From sequence record MN563784.1: a stretch of DNA of 64,000 nt. One strand, written 5' to 3'. Made by a program: the position numbers and the translations under genes. A model generated the notes under the pieces. That model worked only from the letters and a program-made list of their open reading frames with translations, was not told the DNA's origin and ran no database searches. Shown here piece after piece: positions 3,492 through 59,298 of the stretch (within the stretch, counting starts at the first letter, position 1; every line of letters begins with the position of its first letter).

Positions 3492-5780
3492 TTAAAGAGT
3501 GCACGAACCGCCTGCACACCCAACTTCAGTATTAGTTACCTCAACAGCACGTTCAAGTGATTTAATATCAAGTCCTGCTGCTGTTTCTAGATTTACATAA
3601 TACCGGGTTTTCATTCCACGTTTCACCATGTAGAAGTGATTACCTAGCATTTCATTAGAAGAGATCTTTTCAGAACCTACAATGCGTCGGTAGAGGTCCG
3701 CACTGATTGTTTGATCAGTCCACTTTTGAATAATGGCATAGCAATCAATAAGATCTTTAGTGGGGATATCATAAGCTGATTCATACACATAGGAGTCATC
3801 ATCTCCATATGGAGCAGCCCATAGCACACGTGCACCATTATCAGTCTTATTAAGAATTAGGCGACGTACCGGGTATGGACCATTAGTTGACCCTAGTGCC
3901 TTAGATGATGCTTCACCAGGCATGTATGCAGCTAGTACGGAGTGTGCAATACCACCATTCTCCTTAATTTCTTTCTCTAGCTCATCCCATGGATAAAGTT
4001 CTTCAAAGCCACCTTCAATGATAGTATCCACTGACTTATTATAAGTCTTACGTGGAGTCCATCCCTCTGGCCATTTAGTCTTATGAATCCAAGGCGCATT
4101 CCCGCGTTCTTTAGAAATCTTAAGTGACGCCTTGATAAGGAAGTACATATGCCGTTCAGCAATGAAGTGGATTTCAGCTTTACCAGCATCGCTGCTATAT
4201 TTAAGGCCAGCACGTGCCATATGTGTGGCTAGACCCATGATACCAACACCAGCACTCATTCGATTCTTAGCGGTTAGTGCAAGGTGTGGGAAAGCATACT
4301 CTGCATTAAGGATACAATAGTCAATCATCTTAAGTGCGTAGTAAGCCGCCATTTCATAAGTTTGCTTATCAGGAACGTTATCCACTGCAATAGCAGCCAG
4401 TGAACAAGTAGCAATCTCACCGCGCCCGTGATCCTCACTAGAATAAAGATCTTCCATTCGATAGTAAGGCTTAGTGGGTTCTGCGATTTCAAGGCATAGG
4501 TTAGAACTGTAAATAGGTTCTTTAAATGGTGTATGATGATTGAGTTCATCAATTTGAGCTGAATAGATGGTTCCAGTCTCATATGCTTCAACTAGCATTG
4601 ATTTGAGAAGATCCCGAGCATTTACATAAGTTTTCTCAAATTTAGGATCCGCTTCATATTTTTCATAAAGCTTAATAAACTTATCAATATCACCACTATA
4701 GAAAGCATCATGTAGATCTGGAGCAGTAAATGGATTGAATACAAAGATCATGCCATCTTTCTGAGCCGCTTTCTTAGCAAAGAACTTATTACTTAGGAAT
4801 GCATAGTGAAGATCACGGTTCTTCCTATCCTCAGTAGAACGTGGATTACGTAGCTGAGTAATCATATCTGCTTCAGGATCGAAAGCACTGTAGTAACACG
4901 TAACAGCACCACCTCGACCATTTTGTAGGTTAGCCCTTACTGCTTTACCAATTACATCGATGTATGGTTTCTTACCTTGGTGAATGATTAGGCCATTACG
5001 GATAGGATCACCAATTGACCTAGTCATTAAGTTAACACCAATGCCTGCTGATGATTGGGTCATGATGTTAGCAATATAATCGCCCATTGCCAGTGATACA
5101 CCATTATCACCAGAAGCAAATAGGCAACATGATGCAAAACCACGAAGCTTAGTACCTAGGTTAACGTAGTTAGGTGTTGGCGCACTAAGAATTTTATTAG
5201 AAAGTAGTTTATAGTAATTCTCCACATGAGTCATGCGAGTTTCAGCTGGCTCTTTTTCAGCTAGAGCCATTGCCATTCGCATATATACAAACTGGGCAGT
5301 CTCATATTCTTGACCAGTTTTACGATTACGTAGAGCATACTTTCCACGAATGTGATGAAGTGAAAAATGCGGACAAAGTAGGTCAAGATCGTGATCAATG
5401 ATCTTTTCAATCTGAGTGTATTCTTTACTACTATAATCTAATTTAACAATGATACCATCTTTACGCATCCTGGTTTGAAGCGCTTTAACAGTTGGGATGC
5501 CATTTAGACCATAGAACTTCTTACGAAGATAAATCGCATATAGTCTACCAGCCATTAGATAATAAGACCATGTCTTACGATTTAAACATTCTTCAATAAG
5601 TTGTAATTGTAGTTCTTGTGATGAAGTTTTATCACCAAGAGCTTGAACAGCATCCATCACAACACTACTCCAATCCACCTTATCGCCAAGATGTTGGGCT
5701 GCCCATTCACCCCAACCATTAATCTTAGCAGGTGAGTATGCTTCTTCAGTACCGTCTAGTTTAATGATAGTTTTTAACAT
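3492..5780 (-). CDS. nrdA: Ribonucleotide reductase class I alpha subunit
   Basis: N-terminal ATP-cone-like (IIKLDGTEE), TPNYVNLG, ASCCL, SSNLCLEI, C-terminal CxxxxC. Start placed at ATG 5780 instead of track start 5831. Confidence 0.95.
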   Translation of the reverse strand: MLKTIIKLDGTEEAYSPAKINGWGEWAAQHLGDKVDWSSVVMDAVQALGDKTSSQELQLQLIEECLNRKTWSYYLMAGRLYAIYLRKKFYGLNGIPTVKALQTRMRKDGIIVKLDYSSKEYTQIEKIIDHDLDLLCPHFSLHHIRGKYALRNRKTGQEYETAQFVYMRMAMALAEKEPAETRMTHVENYYKLLSNKILSAPTPNYVNLGTKLRGFASCCLFASGDNGVSLAMGDYIANIMTQSSAGIGVNLMTRSIGDPIRNGLIIHQGKKPYIDVIGKAVRANLQNGRGGAVTCYYSAFDPEADMITQLRNPRSTEDRKNRDLHYAFLSNKFFAKKAAQKDGMIFVFNPFTAPDLHDAFYSGDIDKFIKLYEKYEADPKFEKTYVNARDLLKSMLVEAYETGTIYSAQIDELNHHTPFKEPIYSSNLCLEIAEPTKPYYRMEDLYSSEDHGRGEIATCSLAAIAVDNVPDKQTYEMAAYYALKMIDYCILNAEYAFPHLALTAKNRMSAGVGIMGLATHMARAGLKYSSDAGKAEIHFIAERHMYFLIKASLKISKERGNAPWIHKTKWPEGWTPRKTYNKSVDTIIEGGFEELYPWDELEKEIKENGGIAHSVLAAYMPGEASSKALGSTNGPYPVRRLILNKTDNGARVLWAAPYGDDDSYVYESAYDIPTKDLIDCYAIIQKWTDQTISADLYRRIVGSEKISSNEMLGNHFYMVKRGMKTRYYVNLETAAGLDIKSLERAVEVTNTEVGCAGGSCTL

Positions 5781-53439: not shown

Positions 53440-53473
53440 ATGAAAAAAATTTGAGATTTATATTACTAAATTG
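53440..53473 (+). promoter_or_regulatory. Early promoter of chmA
   Basis: aaaaaaatttgagattTATATTAC (53459-53466). Confidence 0.8.
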
Positions 53474-53538
53474 AATCTAGTATACTAAGTACTTAGGTTC
53501 TTCTTGATCAAGAAACCATAATCGTAAAGGTATTTAAA

Positions 53539-55419
53539 ATGGCTGTTAACGAAAACGAAATCGGCACCGTTCAAACTCAAGCTACCGCTCCGGCTCCGCA
53601 ACCCACTGCACAGCGTCAAGCTCAACGTCCTACTGGCGCGCCTGGGTCTACTACTGGCATTAACCATCTAATGCGTCGCTCTGGTCGGCTAGATGGCTCT
53701 GATGCTCGTTCAGCAGATGCCCTACAAGTATTCACTAAAGTAAAAGAAGAAGCAATCCGCCATCAGGACCTACCTGATGACTTCGATATCCATCGTTTCG
53801 ATCGCGATGCACAACAAGTGGGTATGGCTGGTCTACTCATTGTTAAACTAGCTAAAGATATCAATGGTTCCATGAAGGCATTCGTTCGTACTCTAGTACT
53901 CGATAACCTACCTGGTACTCGCATCCGTCCCCGTACCCACAAAATCAACAATGGTCTAACTGATGACATCATTGAAGAGAAGGTACTACCGCGTGATGTA
54001 TTCACTGCTCAATACTGGAGCAAGATCGGCGAGTTCCTACGGAACCGTTACAACATCCCTGGTCTAGAAGTACTATCTGCCGGTCCACGTGCAGTGTATG
54101 CTGACTTCGACTTCAAAGATGAACTAGCTGTTAAGAACCTACTAGTTGAATCCGTTAATATCTGTGAAGATGCTATTGCGCGTCGTAACAATGAGACTCC
54201 GTTCTCTATTGCGACCCACATCAAAGCAGAAAACGAACAGCTTACCTGCAATCTAGACTACAATGGTATTCCGGTTAAAGATAGCTGTGGTAATCCGATC
54301 CGTTCTGACCTGGTCATCTCCACTAGCCGTGGTAAGAAAACCAACGTACCTGAGAACGAGTTCTATGATACCGATAGCCAGCTAAACCAAGTTAGTCTAT
54401 TCGTAGATCTACATTGGACTCCGACCACTGGCCAGCAACAAGGCATGTTTGGCGTAACTCTACCTGGTGCAGTTCTACCTCCGCAGTTCACTCCTTACAT
54501 CGTTATCACTGACGTTCGTAAGGCATCCTGGATCCAAGCATGGACTCTAGAAATGTGGCTGTTCGCGCTTGGTAACGCGTATCGTGCAACTGCATCTCAG
54601 GCATGGGCTCGTACTCTAATGCCGAAGATCGCTACTAGTAAGATGCGTGATATTGGTGCACTTGGTTATTACTCAGAGCTAGGTAAAGCGATTGAAACTC
54701 GCACCGAAGCATTCATGGCAGACGACAGCAACTTCGTAATGCTAATGAACAAGATGGTTAACCAGAACCCTGCATTCCAGATCGATATCGATCCAATGGG
54801 CGACAACTCAGCTATTGAGCAAGTCATCCTAGATGCAGCTGGTGGCGTAAACCAAGCTCGTGCAGTTAGCCTGATCTTCCAAGCTCTAACTAACCTATAC
54901 GGCACTGATTTCCGTCAGTTCTATAACCTAGCTGAAGCTGGTCCGATTATCTTTGACAACCATCATGAAGTAGACCTCGGTCACTACACTGATGAGCATG
55001 GCGAACTAAGCGACCGTCGTGATCTTGACGTTCTAGGTGCCATGAACATGTCTGAAGGTAATGACCAAGAGTGGAAGACCTGGTATGCTACTCAGGTAGG
55101 TAATGACCACATTGTGCGTCGTATGAATAACAGTAAAGGCTTCGACAAGATGTACCTAGGTAACGTTACCTATACTGGTCGTGCTCGTCGTCTAACCTTT
55201 AACCCGAAATTCATCACCGCAATGGATGCCGCAGCAGCAGCCGCTGGTGTAACTGTAACCATGGAAAACCTAATTACCAACTTCGGTCAACAGCGCTTCG
55301 CTGGTTACACCGGTATGGGTAACATGGCTGTTTCTGGTAGTGCACAAGTTGGTATGGCTGGCAGCATGGGTCAAACTTACGGCGCTCCTTCCTATAATGC
55401 ACCGGGTACCTGGTACTAA
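53539..55419 (+). CDS. chmA: Chimallin, phage nucleus shell protein (gp54)
   Basis: [22 protein letters not shown]-terminus recognised; 626 aa; highly expressed codon bias; precedes nvRNAP beta-prime. Confidence 0.92.
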
Positions 55420-55420
55420 T

Positions 55421-55745
55421 AGGAAATACCTCGGTAGATAGGGATGTTAAATAAGTAACATCCCGATTCTAATACTGCGACCCTGGTTCACTTCGGTGAT
55501 AACGGTTAGGAGTAGGTTCCGTGAAGTAATCGACTAGTGGACTTAGTCTAGGTCGACCTATCACTACACGAGGATGATAGATCACTTAACCGAAAGGAGT
55601 TACTCAAAAGGTGACGTGTGATCAAAAACTACAATGGATGGTAAATGATACTAGTGCCGGTATGCTACAGAGAAGAGCGGAGGTTAAGCTTTGTAGATGA
55701 CGCTAGGATCGGGCCAGGCTCCGTTGGTGGTCCATTGTAAAAACT
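55421..55745 (+). ncRNA. Candidate structured non-coding RNA (or chmA 3' UTR), family unassigned
   Basis: No ORF of 60 aa or more on +; at least six stems including a 9 bp long-range helix; closed by terminator. Confidence 0.55.
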
Positions 55746-55789
55746 GATATAGCGGCTCCTTCGGGGGCCGCTTATATCTCCTTTTTTTG
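55746..55789 (+). terminator. Intrinsic terminator, UUCG loop
   Basis: agcggctcc-ttcg-ggggccgct then ttttttt. Confidence 0.85.
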
Positions 55790-55813
55790 TTAATCGATAA
55801 ATAGGAGTTTGGT

Positions 55814-56950
55814 ATGGGTCTTTATGCCAAAGTTGTTGATCATAATGAAGTTCATGATCAATTTACGGGTAAACGAATTTATGCCAATGATTACAATACG
55901 AGTAACTCAGATGAGAAAGAAGAATTTGATAGGCATTTCTATTCTCATTTCCAAGATTCAGAAGCAATTGAAAGTAGTGTAAGCTGTGATTGTCGAGCAA
56001 TCGAAGACGCACATAAACTCGGAGTAATCTGTGATATTTGTAATACTCCAGTTGTCAATACTTCTAGCCGTCCTATCGAACCATCAATGTGGGTTCGTAC
56101 ACCAAAACATGTACGTAGCCTAATTAACCCACGTTTAATCATTATGCTAACCGGATATCTAGTAACTAAAGAATTCGATTTCTTAGCATATCTAACTGAT
56201 ACTTCTTATCGATACGATGTAGAATCTATTGGTTCTAAGGAAACACGCAGGAAAGTAGATAGGCTACTGCATCGAGGATTTGAAAGAGGATTAAATCACT
56301 TCATTGATAATTTCAATGAGATCTTCCAATTCCTACTAGATGCAAATATTATCTCTAATAATAAATCCGAATTCGCTCAATTCGTTGCTCAGAATAAAGA
56401 TAAGTTATTCCCTAAATATTTACCAGTTCCTTCTAAACTCTGTTTCGTAGCAGAATCAACCACATCTGGTACTTACTTAGATAAACCAATTGAAGCAGCA
56501 ATTGATGCTACCTTAACCTTCGCTAGTATTGATGCATCATCTGTACCACTTAGTCCAATTAAAGCTCAGAATAGGACTATGCGAGGACTAAGACTATATG
56601 GCCAGTTCTACGAGATCTACGCAAAATCACGAATTGCTCAAAAGCCTGGTCTTGCTCGGCGTCACATGTTTGGTGCTCGTCTCAACGCTACGGCACGTGC
56701 AGTAATCACTTCTATTAGTGACCCGCATGATTATGATGAACTACATATCCCTTGGGGGGTAGGTTGTCAATTATTAAAGTATCATCTAACCAATAAACTA
56801 AAAGCAAAGTTTAACATGACAACTCGTGAAGCATTCTCATTTGTATATGAGAATGTACTTCAATATAACCAAATCATTGCAGATCTATTTAAAGAGCTAA
56901 TTGCAGAAGCAGCCCCTTATAAAGGGATGGGTTGTACTTTTCACCGAAAT
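55814..56950 (+). CDS. Non-virion RNA polymerase beta-prime-like subunit (gp55), exon 1
   Basis: Zn-binding CxC...CxxC, RRHMFGAR..ATARAVI (beta-prime region C); ends at FHRN with TAA immediately after. Confidence 0.9.
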
Positions 56951-58144
56951 TAATTTAGTTAGGAAAAAAAGCATTTGACTAGGGTGTGGCGCCTGATGTC
57001 ACTAACAGTGAGGAAATATGGATGAAGAATTAGACTGGCGAAAAATACCTGGTTTTAGTCGTTATGAAATTAATCAGTTCGGTATAGTGCGTAACTTAAA
57101 CCATGATATTATCTCACAACATGAGAATAAATCATCTAAAGGTACATACTTGACTGTTAACATCATTAACGATAAAGGTGAGAGAAAGATAAGATATCCG
57201 CATAGATTTGTATGTATGGTATTTAATGGATTGCCAGATAATCCTGATGATTGGGATGTAAACCATAAAGATACGAATAAGCATAATAACTATTATCGTA
57301 ATCTGGAATGGATAACACATAGTGGCAATGTCAAACATGCTTTTATAACAGGTGCGAATAAACATGCCCTTTCTGTAAAATGTACAGATGTAATAACTAA
57401 GGAAGTATGGAACTTCATCTCAATGAAAGAAGTTGCAGAATTCCTTGAACTGAAACATAAGAAAGGTTTACATGTAGTTCTTGCACACACTGAAAAACCA
57501 TATAACGGGCGTTATATTTTTGAGGTAACGGGTGAATACCATCCGCAACAAAGAAAGAATGCAATTGAAGTTTATTGCATTGATTTTAAAACAGGTACAT
57601 TCTATCGAGCAGTAAACCTTACTGATCTCCAATTAAAAACAGGATTGATTAAAGGTACTATCCAAGATATCCTGAAGAAACGCGATCTTCGAGTTTTTAA
57701 TGGAGTAGTTGTCTGTAAGGTTGAGGATAAGGAACGGTTATTCGAATACGTTTCTAAACTCACCCAAACTGAGATAGATGAATCTATAGAGAAATACAAT
57801 CGTTATCAAATGCTTAAAACACTACGGTGCGCCACCAAGAGCCGTAAGTGACCCTAACCAATGGTTTCCTTGTAATAGAAATATTACTCGACAAAACTCC
57901 TTTAATTGCTGGAACATCTCACTGAGACAATCAGCAGCGAAGCCTATTAGAAATAATAGGAACGTTCAACGACTATCGAAAGGCACGAAAGTGAACCGAG
58001 TAGAGTAGAGTCAAGTGACTCGAAATGGGGAGCACCTTACTGGGTAATGCCAAAGGTGAAGATATAGTCTGGTCTGCATGGTGACATGCAGCTGTCTATT
58101 ATTAATAGACGGGATAAGCTTAACGAACTTATCTGAACACAACG
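56951..58144 (+). mobile_element. Group I intron 1 (1194 nt) carrying an HNH endonuclease
   Basis: Follows exon U, ends in G; P aattgctggaa 57904, Q aatcagcagc 57929, R gttcaacgacta 57964, S aagatatagtc 58059; splicing restores HRN|PTLQRGS. Confidence 0.9.
57018..57851 (+). CDS. Intron-encoded HNH homing endonuclease (NUMOD4-HNH, I-HmuI-like)
   Basis: WRKIPGFSRYEINQFG (NUMOD4-like), HRFVC...VNHKDTNKHNNYYRNLEW (HNH); SD gagga. Confidence 0.9.
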   Translation: MDEELDWRKIPGFSRYEINQFGIVRNLNHDIISQHENKSSKGTYLTVNIINDKGERKIRYPHRFVCMVFNGLPDNPDDWDVNHKDTNKHNNYYRNLEWITHSGNVKHAFITGANKHALSVKCTDVITKEVWNFISMKEVAEFLELKHKKGLHVVLAHTEKPYNGRYIFEVTGEYHPQQRKNAIEVYCIDFKTGTFYRAVNLTDLQLKTGLIKGTIQDILKKRDLRVFNGVVVCKVEDKERLFEYVSKLTQTEIDESIEKYNRYQMLKTLRCATKSRK

Positions 58145-58252: not shown

Positions 58253-58750
58253 GGACAAGTAACTAACTAAATAAGGTAAAAACAATGGAACAAAACGGAG
58301 TAGTGTCCGTCTTTGATCCGGCTTTATTTAAAATTGAATATGAAGTGCTTGATAAATACCTTATTAAGTTAATCAAGTCTAGTTCCCCCAGTGAGTAATC
58401 ATTGGGGTGAGTTCTCTCTAATTGCTGGGATATCCTGTTAAACTAATCTACCACTGCGAGTCGAAAGACAAAGCCAAGGTTTGAAAAAAGATTAGGTAGG
58501 GCCAATCAGCAGCCAAGCTCCGTAACATTCCATTTAGGAATAGGAGAAGGTTCAACGACTATTACGGTATCAGGTGCACCGGTCCTAGAAATAGGATGTA
58601 GGGTCAAGTGACTCGAAATGGGAGACACCCCACTCCGAAAGGAAGGGTGAAGATATAGTCTGGTCTGCATGGTGACATGCAGCAGGTGGTAATTATCATG
58701 TGGTAATTATACTACCGGGTATGGATTAACGACCCATACTGAACATAACG
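58253..58750 (+). mobile_element. Group I intron 2 (498 nt), no endonuclease
   Basis: P 58420, Q 58504, R 58550, S 58650; ends gaacataacg like intron 1 (gaacacaacg); splicing restores N|ADFDGD. Confidence 0.88.
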
Positions 58751-59109: not shown

Positions 59110-59298
59110 ATGTCTAATATTCGTGAAATTATTCGACGTAACCCGGAATGTTTATCACAAGTCGAACGAGATGAACGTGAAGCCAGATCGGTAGCCGTAT
59201 TAACTAAGAGATATATTACTCGCGGGAATGGTGATGTAGTGGTAAACAGAAGGTTTGTCGATGCATATGTCGAAATGATCTCTAAGCTTAATGATTAA
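59110..59298 (+). CDS. Small hypothetical protein
   Basis: SD aagggga; promoter variant TATATCAC at 59071. Confidence 0.65.
   Translation: MSNIREIIRRNPECLSQVERDEREARSVAVLTKRYITRGNGDVVVNRRFVDAYVEMISKLND

Follow-up and report, generated by a model that had tools for sequence, protein, structure and literature searches.

A conserved, modular folded RNA between chmA and a non-virion RNA polymerase gene in phiKZ-like Pseudomonas phages

Between chmA, the gene whose product is the protein of the nuclear shell, and gp55, the beta′-like gene of the non-virion RNA polymerase (nvRNAP), the 64,000-nucleotide (nt) stretch of DNA analysed here (sequence record MN563784.1, hereafter the window) carries what, judging from its sequence, is a real, conserved, multi-domain folded RNA. 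This RNA very probably represents a fold that has been selected for a function, and comparison with other phages and with known RNAs indicates that it is the founding example of an undescribed family, narrowly distributed among Pseudomonas chimalliviruses. The family is new within a kind that is already known, the structured RNAs found in 3′ untranslated regions (UTRs) of phages, and is unusual in its size, in the exchange of its modules and in the conservation of its loops.

Positions 55300-55900 of the window are 100% identical to Pseudomonas phage KTN4 and to ten further phiKZ-like phages, and 99% identical to phiKZ; from these matches, the source of the window is taken to be a phiKZ-like phage. 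The stop codon of chmA (55417-55419) is followed by TAG, and 394 nt separate it from the ATG of gp55. An original prediction, made from the letters of the window only, had pointed to about 370 nt of structured RNA without a plus-strand open reading frame (ORF) in this gap, and the observation has been borne out: the only ORFs present are short and not conserved (31 aa on the plus strand, 55645-55740, and 38 aa on the minus strand, 55469-55585), and the plus strand of the gap has a minimum free energy of -122 kcal/mol versus -100.4 ± 5.5 kcal/mol for shuffled sequences (z = -3.96), a value that 0 of the 100 shuffles equalled. Additionally, the plus strand alone accommodates the numerous G-U pairs and the replacements of A-U by G-U or the reverse, and it is therefore the strand on which the RNA is read.

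The possibility of a small protein-coding gene in the gap was considered and rejected, as the start codon of the plus-strand ORF is not kept, insertions and deletions are found, and the annotated coding sequences differ. In fact, no ORF is conserved in any frame among the relatives. The ATG of the 31-aa ORF is confined to the KTN4/phiKZ subgroup, there being no ATG at this place in SL2, PA7 or Pawinskivirus; a 1-nt deletion in PA7 falls inside the 38-aa ORF; and 1- and 2-nt insertions and deletions are scattered across the gap between close relatives. The small coding sequences annotated here in GenBank records (KEN51, HPP-Temi, HHBS36_1 and others) vary in position and strand. Automated calls of hypothetical proteins inside the RNA occur, for instance, at L003:549-820, L004:574-1015 and L006:574-1014 of the collected loci (KEN51, HPP-Temi and HHBS36_1 being among the records), and the small proteins called here in several records are most likely false calls rather than genes.

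The element is 96-100% identical within the phiKZ-like phages and, where it can be aligned with Pawinskivirus (95% of its length), still about 85% identical (PA1C, HPP-Temi, PS119XW, HHBS36_1 and others), although the Pawinskivirus ChmA protein is only 48% identical to that of the window. When identity to PA1C is followed in bins of 100 nt, values of 0.47-0.67 are obtained in chmA, 0.82-0.90 in the element and 0.57-0.66 in the 700 nt of gp55 that follow, two bins further on reaching 0.71-0.77; in this comparison, no part of the locus is better conserved than the non-coding stretch.

Three modules make up the fold (Table 1), each of them present once in the window: M1, a four-way junction formed by a closing helix and three arms; M2, a three-way junction; and M3, the conserved core of about 110 nt, in which the nested helices P6/P6′, P7 and P8 are separated by internal loops and capped by a 16-nt terminal loop. 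Of the pairs that differ between PA1C and the window, 12 have retained their pairing and three have not, two of the latter being terminal pairs of P6 that a 2-nt deletion removes. Among close relatives, 99.6% of the pairs of M2 and M3 are kept, while the 48 pairs of M1 are 98.4% paired, five of them with compensatory changes, in comparison with 30-45% in controls in which the 3′ partner was slid.

Covariance models were built for M1 (model R1) and for M2 plus M3 (model R2). With the latter, M3 was found directly 3′ of chmA in two uncultured genomes of 314-317 kb from IMG/VR, L066 (93.7 bits) and L056 (77.7 bits), and a motif scan of metagenomes added a third, L134 (84.1 bits), with M3 likewise after chmA. 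Psa21 and D6, two phages of Pseudomonas syringae, are related to these three, with 83-87% identity in the flanks, and the ChmA proteins of the three are about 43% identical to that of the window. In an alignment of 14 sequences fitted to the model, 30 of the 54 pairs show compensatory changes and 99.4% of the cells are paired, whereas sliding the 3′ partner by 1-3 columns leaves 31-50% paired and at most five compensatory pairs. Between the two clades, the paired positions of M3 are 38-41% identical and the unpaired ones 86-89% (identities taken from the model alignment, as a global MAFFT alignment with L066 misaligns the core; MAFFT was also seen to shift the 3′ strand of P7 in the distant clade), and 34 of the 44 unpaired columns of M3, in loops and junctions, are invariant. 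When L066, L056 and L134 are taken into account, helix P5 of M2 shows compensatory changes in five of its six pairs, although part of the stem aligned as P5 in the latter two, L056 and L134, is chmA coding sequence.

Covariation, which the original prediction had named as a check on its fold, is thus positive and strong among the relatives, and the large, multi-domain, structured plus-strand RNA that it had proposed is borne out by the fold, the pairing and the compensatory changes. It is hardly credible that the region is without function, as the leftover of a decayed gene or a hitch-hiking spacer that happens to fold would be. The site does tolerate deletion and replacement (see below), as would be expected of such a spacer, but it holds the best-conserved stretch of the locus, substitutions in its stems almost always keep pairing, with 30 compensatory pairs, its loops are much better kept than its stems across clades, and no conserved ORF is left in any frame that would speak for a decayed gene.

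At the level of single stems, seven of the nine that had been listed in the original prediction were found where it had placed them and are kept in relatives. These are 55441-49/55456-64, 55488-91/55496-99, 55530-35/55551-56, 55581-85/55618-22 (with the CC-GAAA-GG hairpin), 55665-72/55689-96, the long-range helix P6 and the terminator hairpin with its U-run. The 55488-91/55496-99 and CC-GAAA-GG hairpins hardly or never vary and consequently give no covariation signal; the remaining ones carry compensatory changes, although 55581-85/55618-22 varies only in the model-fitted alignment of 14 sequences. By contrast, the other two, acgg/ccgt (55502-05/55519-22) and ctatca/tgatag (55558-63/55575-80), are not favoured: only about 90% of their cells are paired, they are broken in Pawinskivirus, W10-2 and HPP-Temi, and they are outcompeted by P3 and P4, for which the figure is 98-100% and where a compensatory change from U-A to C-G is seen. 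For P6, RNAalifold run on close relatives alone paired the 5′ strand of M3 with a nearby UCCGUUG repeat and joined M2 to the tail of the terminator. This alternative was rejected because, in the distant members, P6 covaries with the outer strand, just as had been proposed originally.

A further interaction is suggested by the core. The terminal loop of M3 can pair with the 3′ joining strand, between P6′ and P6, as a candidate 7-bp pseudoknot (Table 1); all seven positions are complementary, both segments are invariant in 14 of 14 sequences, and the 3′ strand falls in an invariant block of 17 nt, CCAGGCUCCGUUGGUGG. Two strings resembling Shine-Dalgarno sequences were also seen in the RNA, with no ORF behind either of them. 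One, AAGGAG (55594-55599), lies inside M2 and is not kept in L066. The other, GGAGGU (55679-55684), is located in the P8 loop. Only L056, one base shorter at this site (GGAGG-G), departs from it, and the GGAG of this string would pair with CUCC in the candidate pseudoknot.

Table 1. Coordinates, in the window, of the modules and helices of the RNA and of the flanking features.
Feature	Position	Strand	Basis or remarks
M1	55429..55573	+	Covariance model R1, compensatory changes
M1 P1	55429-33/55569-73	+	
M1 P2	55435-38/55468-71 plus 55441-49/55456-64	+	
M1 P3	55473-76/55511-14 and 55478-82/55504-09	+	Cap 55488-91/55496-99 with UUCG loop
M1 P4	55521-26/55558-64 with 55530-35/55551-56 and 55538-42/55546-50	+	
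M2	55580..55623	+	P5 55580-85/55618-23; hairpins 55590-97 (CC-GAAA-GG) and 55599-604/55610-15
M3	55630..55739	+	Conserved core
M3 P6	55630-38/55731-39	+	Compensatory changes in 7/9 pairs
M3 P6′	55639-42/55713-16	+	
M3 P7	55647-56/55701-10	+	Compensatory changes in 8/10 pairs
M3 P8	55663-72/55689-99	+	Compensatory changes in 5/10 pairs
Candidate pseudoknot, 5′ strand	55676..55682	+	AGCGGAG, P8 loop; partner 55719-55725
Candidate pseudoknot, 3′ strand	55719..55725	+	CUCCGUU, strand joining P6′ to P6
chmA intrinsic terminator	55746..55788	+	Hairpin 55746-55778, UUCG loop; 7 U at 55782-88; fold and alignment
chmA (gp54, PHIKZ054, nuclear shell protein)	53539..55419	+	ORF; 100% to KTN4, 99.7% to PHIKZ054
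gp55 first exon (nvRNAP beta′-like gene)	55814..56953	+	ATG 55814; ribosome-binding site 55803-07

Phage PhiPA3, in which M1 is found by R1 (42 bits), provides a third set of pairs for the hairpin 55441-49/55456-64 of P2. The tip of P3 is CUC-GAAA-GAG in this phage versus UCAC-UUCG-GUGA in the window, although the assignment of P3 and P4 in PhiPA3 was read by eye and should be taken as our interpretation. The R1 alignment of this phage is unreliable, since M1 was closed on an internal near-repeat and the tip of P3 was treated as an insertion. In PhiPA3 (L002:2600-2760), arm P4 of M1 holds an insertion of about 150 nt with a near-repeat of the 3′ closing segment of M1.

The original prediction could not match the RNA to a known family, and this agrees with a search against Rfam 15 (4227 covariance models), in which no hit reached the gathering threshold and the best ones cover the terminator hairpin only (for example STnc130, 21.8 bits versus a threshold of 55); the loci of seven relatives gave nothing at E <= 0.1. 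As a positive control, the same library detects two group I introns about 2 kb downstream. No hit to the group I intron model (RF00028) was obtained in 55421-55800, a region that is intergenic, and ARAGORN found no tRNA or tmRNA in 55000-56200. M1 shares the four-way junction with tRNA, but its 145 nt are about twice the size of one. A description of this fold, family or distribution was not found in the literature.

The possibility that M3 is a self-cleaving ribozyme, or the relic of a mobile RNA, that processes the 3′ end of chmA was also evaluated. Compact nested helices, a candidate loop-to-junction pseudoknot and many invariant nucleotides are features of small ribozymes, and two group I introns and an HNH homing endonuclease are found in the same operon. 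However, no ribozyme or intron model matches the element in a search that does detect both introns, terminal repeats and target-site duplications are lacking, and the state of the site in D6 (see below) resembles a simple deletion that retains part of the 3′ strand of P6. This explanation must consequently be considered very improbable.

The introns themselves belong to the split gp55. The ORF of its first exon ends at 56953, at the residue that matches position 366 of the 476 of PA1C, and is followed by an ORF for an HNH endonuclease (57018-57851; Pfam HNH_3) and by the two introns found in the Rfam search (57846-58091, 95 bits, and 58361-58682, 78 bits). The annotated length of gp55 varies among records of phiKZ-like phages (379, 419-423 or 437 aa), which suggests that its exons have been annotated inconsistently.

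Every member of the family is placed between the stop codon of chmA and the terminator that precedes the nvRNAP gene, and the content of this site varies from phage to phage. M1, M2 and M3 are present in phiKZ-like phages and in Pawinskivirus. In phiHQ, a different 5′ part of about 300 nt is followed by M2 and M3, and in PhiPA3 an expanded M1 is followed by M2, which is thus kept in both phages, and then by a divergent 3′ part without recognisable M3 (R2 gives 19 bits, mostly from M2). L066 carries a variant M2 plus M3, while L056 and L134 have M3 alone, beginning at the stop codon. In Psa21, another non-coding module is found, homologous to the 5′ part of phiHQ (73% identity over 156 nt with blastn; alignable over about 300 nt). 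Contigs of the L051 type carry yet another cassette of about 130 nt with the same terminator behind it (L051:4180-4460). Protein-coding inserts occupy the site in 201phi2-1, Phabio and Viktualia, and in D6 and Noxifer there is only the terminator, the gap being about 85 nt. As these arrangements show, the modules are separable and are exchanged between phages at one site.

Some of the other fillings deserve a description of their own. The non-coding module that a P. aeruginosa phage (phiHQ, L007:494-800) and a P. syringae phage (Psa21, L014:4256-4625) have in common, about 300 nt in length, has no match in Rfam, and the 89-aa minus-strand ORF that it contains in Psa21 (gp057, 4341-4583) is not kept in phiHQ. 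In Phabio, 284 nt of non-coding sequence between chmA and gp83 (L017:4253-4536) contain several hairpins capped by GNRA and UUCG loops; apart from a marginal score of 15 bits with R2, this stretch matches none of the modules described here. In D6 (L016:4259-4345), about 20 nt separate the stop codon from the terminator, and TGGTTGA, part of the 3′ strand of P6, is kept. As this sequence stands next to a terminator shared with L056 (L056:4397-4560), D6 looks like a deletion derivative.

With the R1 and R2 models and inspection of the locus, the element was not found in Noxifer, D6, Psa21, 201phi2-1 or Viktualia, and its presence varies even between phages whose flanks are 83-87% identical. Searches in larger collections gave a similarly narrow distribution. 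A motif scan for M2 in IMG/VR returned 28 loci, of which nhmmer leaves PA7 and PhiPA3 as the only real ones. The two-block motif of M3 was found in IMG/VR at four loci, three of them true (PA7, L056 and L066) and one a chance match (L076); in 185,579 genomes (596 Gb) at 55 loci, none of them in Pseudomonas and none scoring with R2, a number that we estimate to be close to chance expectation, the scan thus giving no sign of the element in bacterial genomes; and in metagenomes at 31 loci, one of them true (L134). In these scans of IMG/VR, metagenomes and genomes, the element was never seen outside the context of chmA and its terminator. On this distribution, it is an accessory of some Pseudomonas phages and not a general part of the phage nucleus. 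The original prediction had linked the RNA to the assembly of the nucleus, to translation localised at the shell or to the export of mRNA. Such a role, as a device at the core of nucleus-forming phages, was not supported, because the element is absent from several of them and its presence differs between phages with 83-87% identical flanks, and because its modules are exchanged.

Such a pattern might rather suggest an accessory, trans-acting RNA engaged in an arms race, that is, an exchangeable cassette acting as a decoy or sponge for a host RNA-binding protein, a nuclease or an RNA-sensing defence. At least seven different fillings are found at the same site in Pseudomonas chimalliviruses, with modules in varying combinations; presence and absence differ between closely related flanks; and there is strong sequence constraint wherever the element is present. 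Nevertheless, it never occurs outside the chmA-terminator context, motif scans giving chance-level matches only, and no target is known. Moreover, in a rough count of our own, GGA motifs are not enriched beyond what base composition predicts, which argues against a sponge of the RsmA type (or of the Crc type). We therefore regard a role of this kind as quite unlikely.

The terminator itself is not listed by a simple terminator scanner, although both the fold and the alignment show its hairpin. It is the same, in the aligned states, in relatives with M3, with other cassettes or with none, which speaks against a classical riboswitch platform. The start codon of gp55 lies 25 nt past the U-run, which leaves no room for a promoter of its own. 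An exact copy of TATATTAC, which we take to be the early-promoter core (an assumption that was checked only against this copy), is found upstream of chmA at 53459-53466, and the next exact copies on the plus strand are at 59212 and 62803. With up to one mismatch, no similar motif was found in 53466-57872 (middle and late promoters are poorly defined), so early expression of gp55 probably needs read-through of the chmA terminator. As the only terminator before gp55 follows the element and no motif resembling an early promoter intervenes, co-transcription with chmA, as had been proposed from the letters, is the simplest reading. In phiKZ, two start sites are reported for PHIKZ054, a primary one that is early and a secondary one that is middle, and the gene is described as heading an operon of six (PMC8244752), and in 201phi2-1 no promoter has been found for gp107, the homologue of gp55, the nearest early promoter being about 3 kb upstream (PMC11512511).

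These observations also support the main rival of the reading that we prefer, in which the element would serve the nvRNAP gene as a leader or attenuator that, by acting in cis on the phage RNA polymerase or by sensing a ligand, sets the level of read-through and hence the ratio of ChmA to nvRNAP. In addition to the position of gp55 in an operon headed by PHIKZ054, with neither room nor motif for an early promoter of its own, this explanation is favoured by the spacing between the end of M3 and the terminator, which is 6-12 nt in every member, and by the combination of conserved loops and covarying stems, which recalls a riboswitch aptamer. By contrast, inspection by eye of the sequences of phiKZ, Pawinskivirus and L066, which did not extend to a systematic search for alternative folds, showed no anti-terminator pairing, and Rfam shows no similarity to put, EAR or any riboswitch. 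Furthermore, the same terminator is kept in D6, which is free of any cassette, and in phages with unrelated cassettes; consequently, read-through does not need M3. Control of read-through in cis is thus, in our opinion, rather unlikely.

The reading that we tentatively prefer, and that as a whole we consider possible rather than established, is that of a structured chmA 3′ UTR that yields a stable, factor-binding RNA. Transcription from the chmA promoters would mostly stop at the intrinsic terminator, and the compact fold, together with the terminator hairpin, would persist and accumulate as an abundant, discrete RNA derived from the 3′ UTR, which may either stay on the chmA mRNA or be cut off near the A-rich stretch past the stop codon. 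The invariant unpaired nucleotides could then offer a specific binding surface for a protein or another factor, through which any effect would be exerted. The element does lie where a 3′-UTR-derived small RNA is to be expected, between the stop codon and the terminator hairpin of the parental mRNA, and there is a precedent in phiKZ, where the non-coding RNA (ncRNA) derived from the 3′ UTR of PHIKZ298 ends at the terminator of its own mRNA (PMC8545117). As for the partner, the only candidate with experimental support is ChmC, a phage RNA-binding protein. In PhiPA3, which carries M1 and M2, enhanced crosslinking and immunoprecipitation (eCLIP) of ChmC gave high coverage, with peaks between chmA (gp53) and gp54, and the authors suggested small regulatory RNAs (Enustun et al. 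2024, PMC11077065).

Several considerations weigh against this preferred reading. The binding of ChmC cannot be assigned to the core, because PhiPA3 has no recognisable M3. Three studies of phiKZ, by differential RNA sequencing, Grad-seq and ONT-cappable-seq list ncRNA candidates but, supplementary tables apart, not this region. As the element is dispensable in D6, a close relative, any function would be accessory. Regarding the fold, the alignment of 14 sequences was fitted to the model, which favours structure; many of its compensatory cells trace to few events, because the distant members form a single further clade; and the pseudoknot is not testable by covariation, since neither of its strands varies.

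Among known systems, the closest are 3′UTR_PHIKZ298 of phiKZ and ncRNA1 and ncRNA2 of PAK_P3, which are likewise placed between a stop codon and the intrinsic terminator of their own mRNA, lack a separately mapped start site and are presumed to be products of processing (PMC8545117; PMC10914365). However, these are RNAs of about 90-210 nt, with two simple stem-loops, that are conserved within a genus, while the present one, of about 330 nt, combines three modules rich in junctions with a candidate pseudoknot, and its covariation extends across genera.

The put sites of HK022 and the EAR element of Bacillus eps operons are also structured RNAs located in an operon just upstream of a terminator that has to be passed for the expression of essential genes, but neither their sequence nor their structure matches, relatives without the RNA keep the terminator, and the polymerases involved here are encoded by the phage. 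Riboswitch aptamers resemble the element in their covarying stems around conserved unpaired nucleotides, a possible pseudoknot, and a terminator followed by the start of a gene. In contrast to them, the element is preceded by an ORF and not by a promoter, its platform stays the same when the aptamer changes, and no riboswitch of Rfam matches. GOLLD and ROOL are, like this RNA, multi-domain RNAs carried by phages and supported by covariation, the function of neither being known, although the element is smaller, has a fixed position in the 3′ UTR of an mRNA, is restricted to Pseudomonas chimalliviruses and has no match in Rfam. Finally, the 3′ UTRs of RNA viruses (exonuclease-resistant RNAs, tRNA-like structures, 3′ translation enhancers) also present modular, pseudoknotted folds at the 3′ end, with exchange of modules, but these viruses are eukaryotic and the enzymes different, and the likeness is one of functional analogy only.

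Of the genes of nucleus-forming jumbo phages, chmA comes first and is the most critical, and the product of gp55 is an essential subunit of the polymerase on which the remaining programme of the phage depends. A conserved RNA able to form a pseudoknot between these two genes is therefore a mutable handle on post-transcriptional control, and both antisense oligomers and engineering with Cas13 have already been made to work in phiKZ on PAO1. It also provides a defined RNA to which the eCLIP peaks of ChmC in the same gap of PhiPA3 can be related. In addition, one intergenic site swaps whole modules of structured RNA between phage genera, a behaviour that is usually seen for accessory or counter-defence functions. 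Although we consider it unlikely, M3 might be a functional, pseudoknotted RNA of a new class that, as a sensor or as a switch binding the polymerase or ChmC, decides the fate of the chmA transcript, the most important early one of a nucleus-forming phage. If this were the case, M3 could set the read-through of the phage polymerase from chmA into the nvRNAP gene, or the handover of the chmA mRNA to ChmC-dependent RNA handling at the early vesicle or at the phage nucleus.

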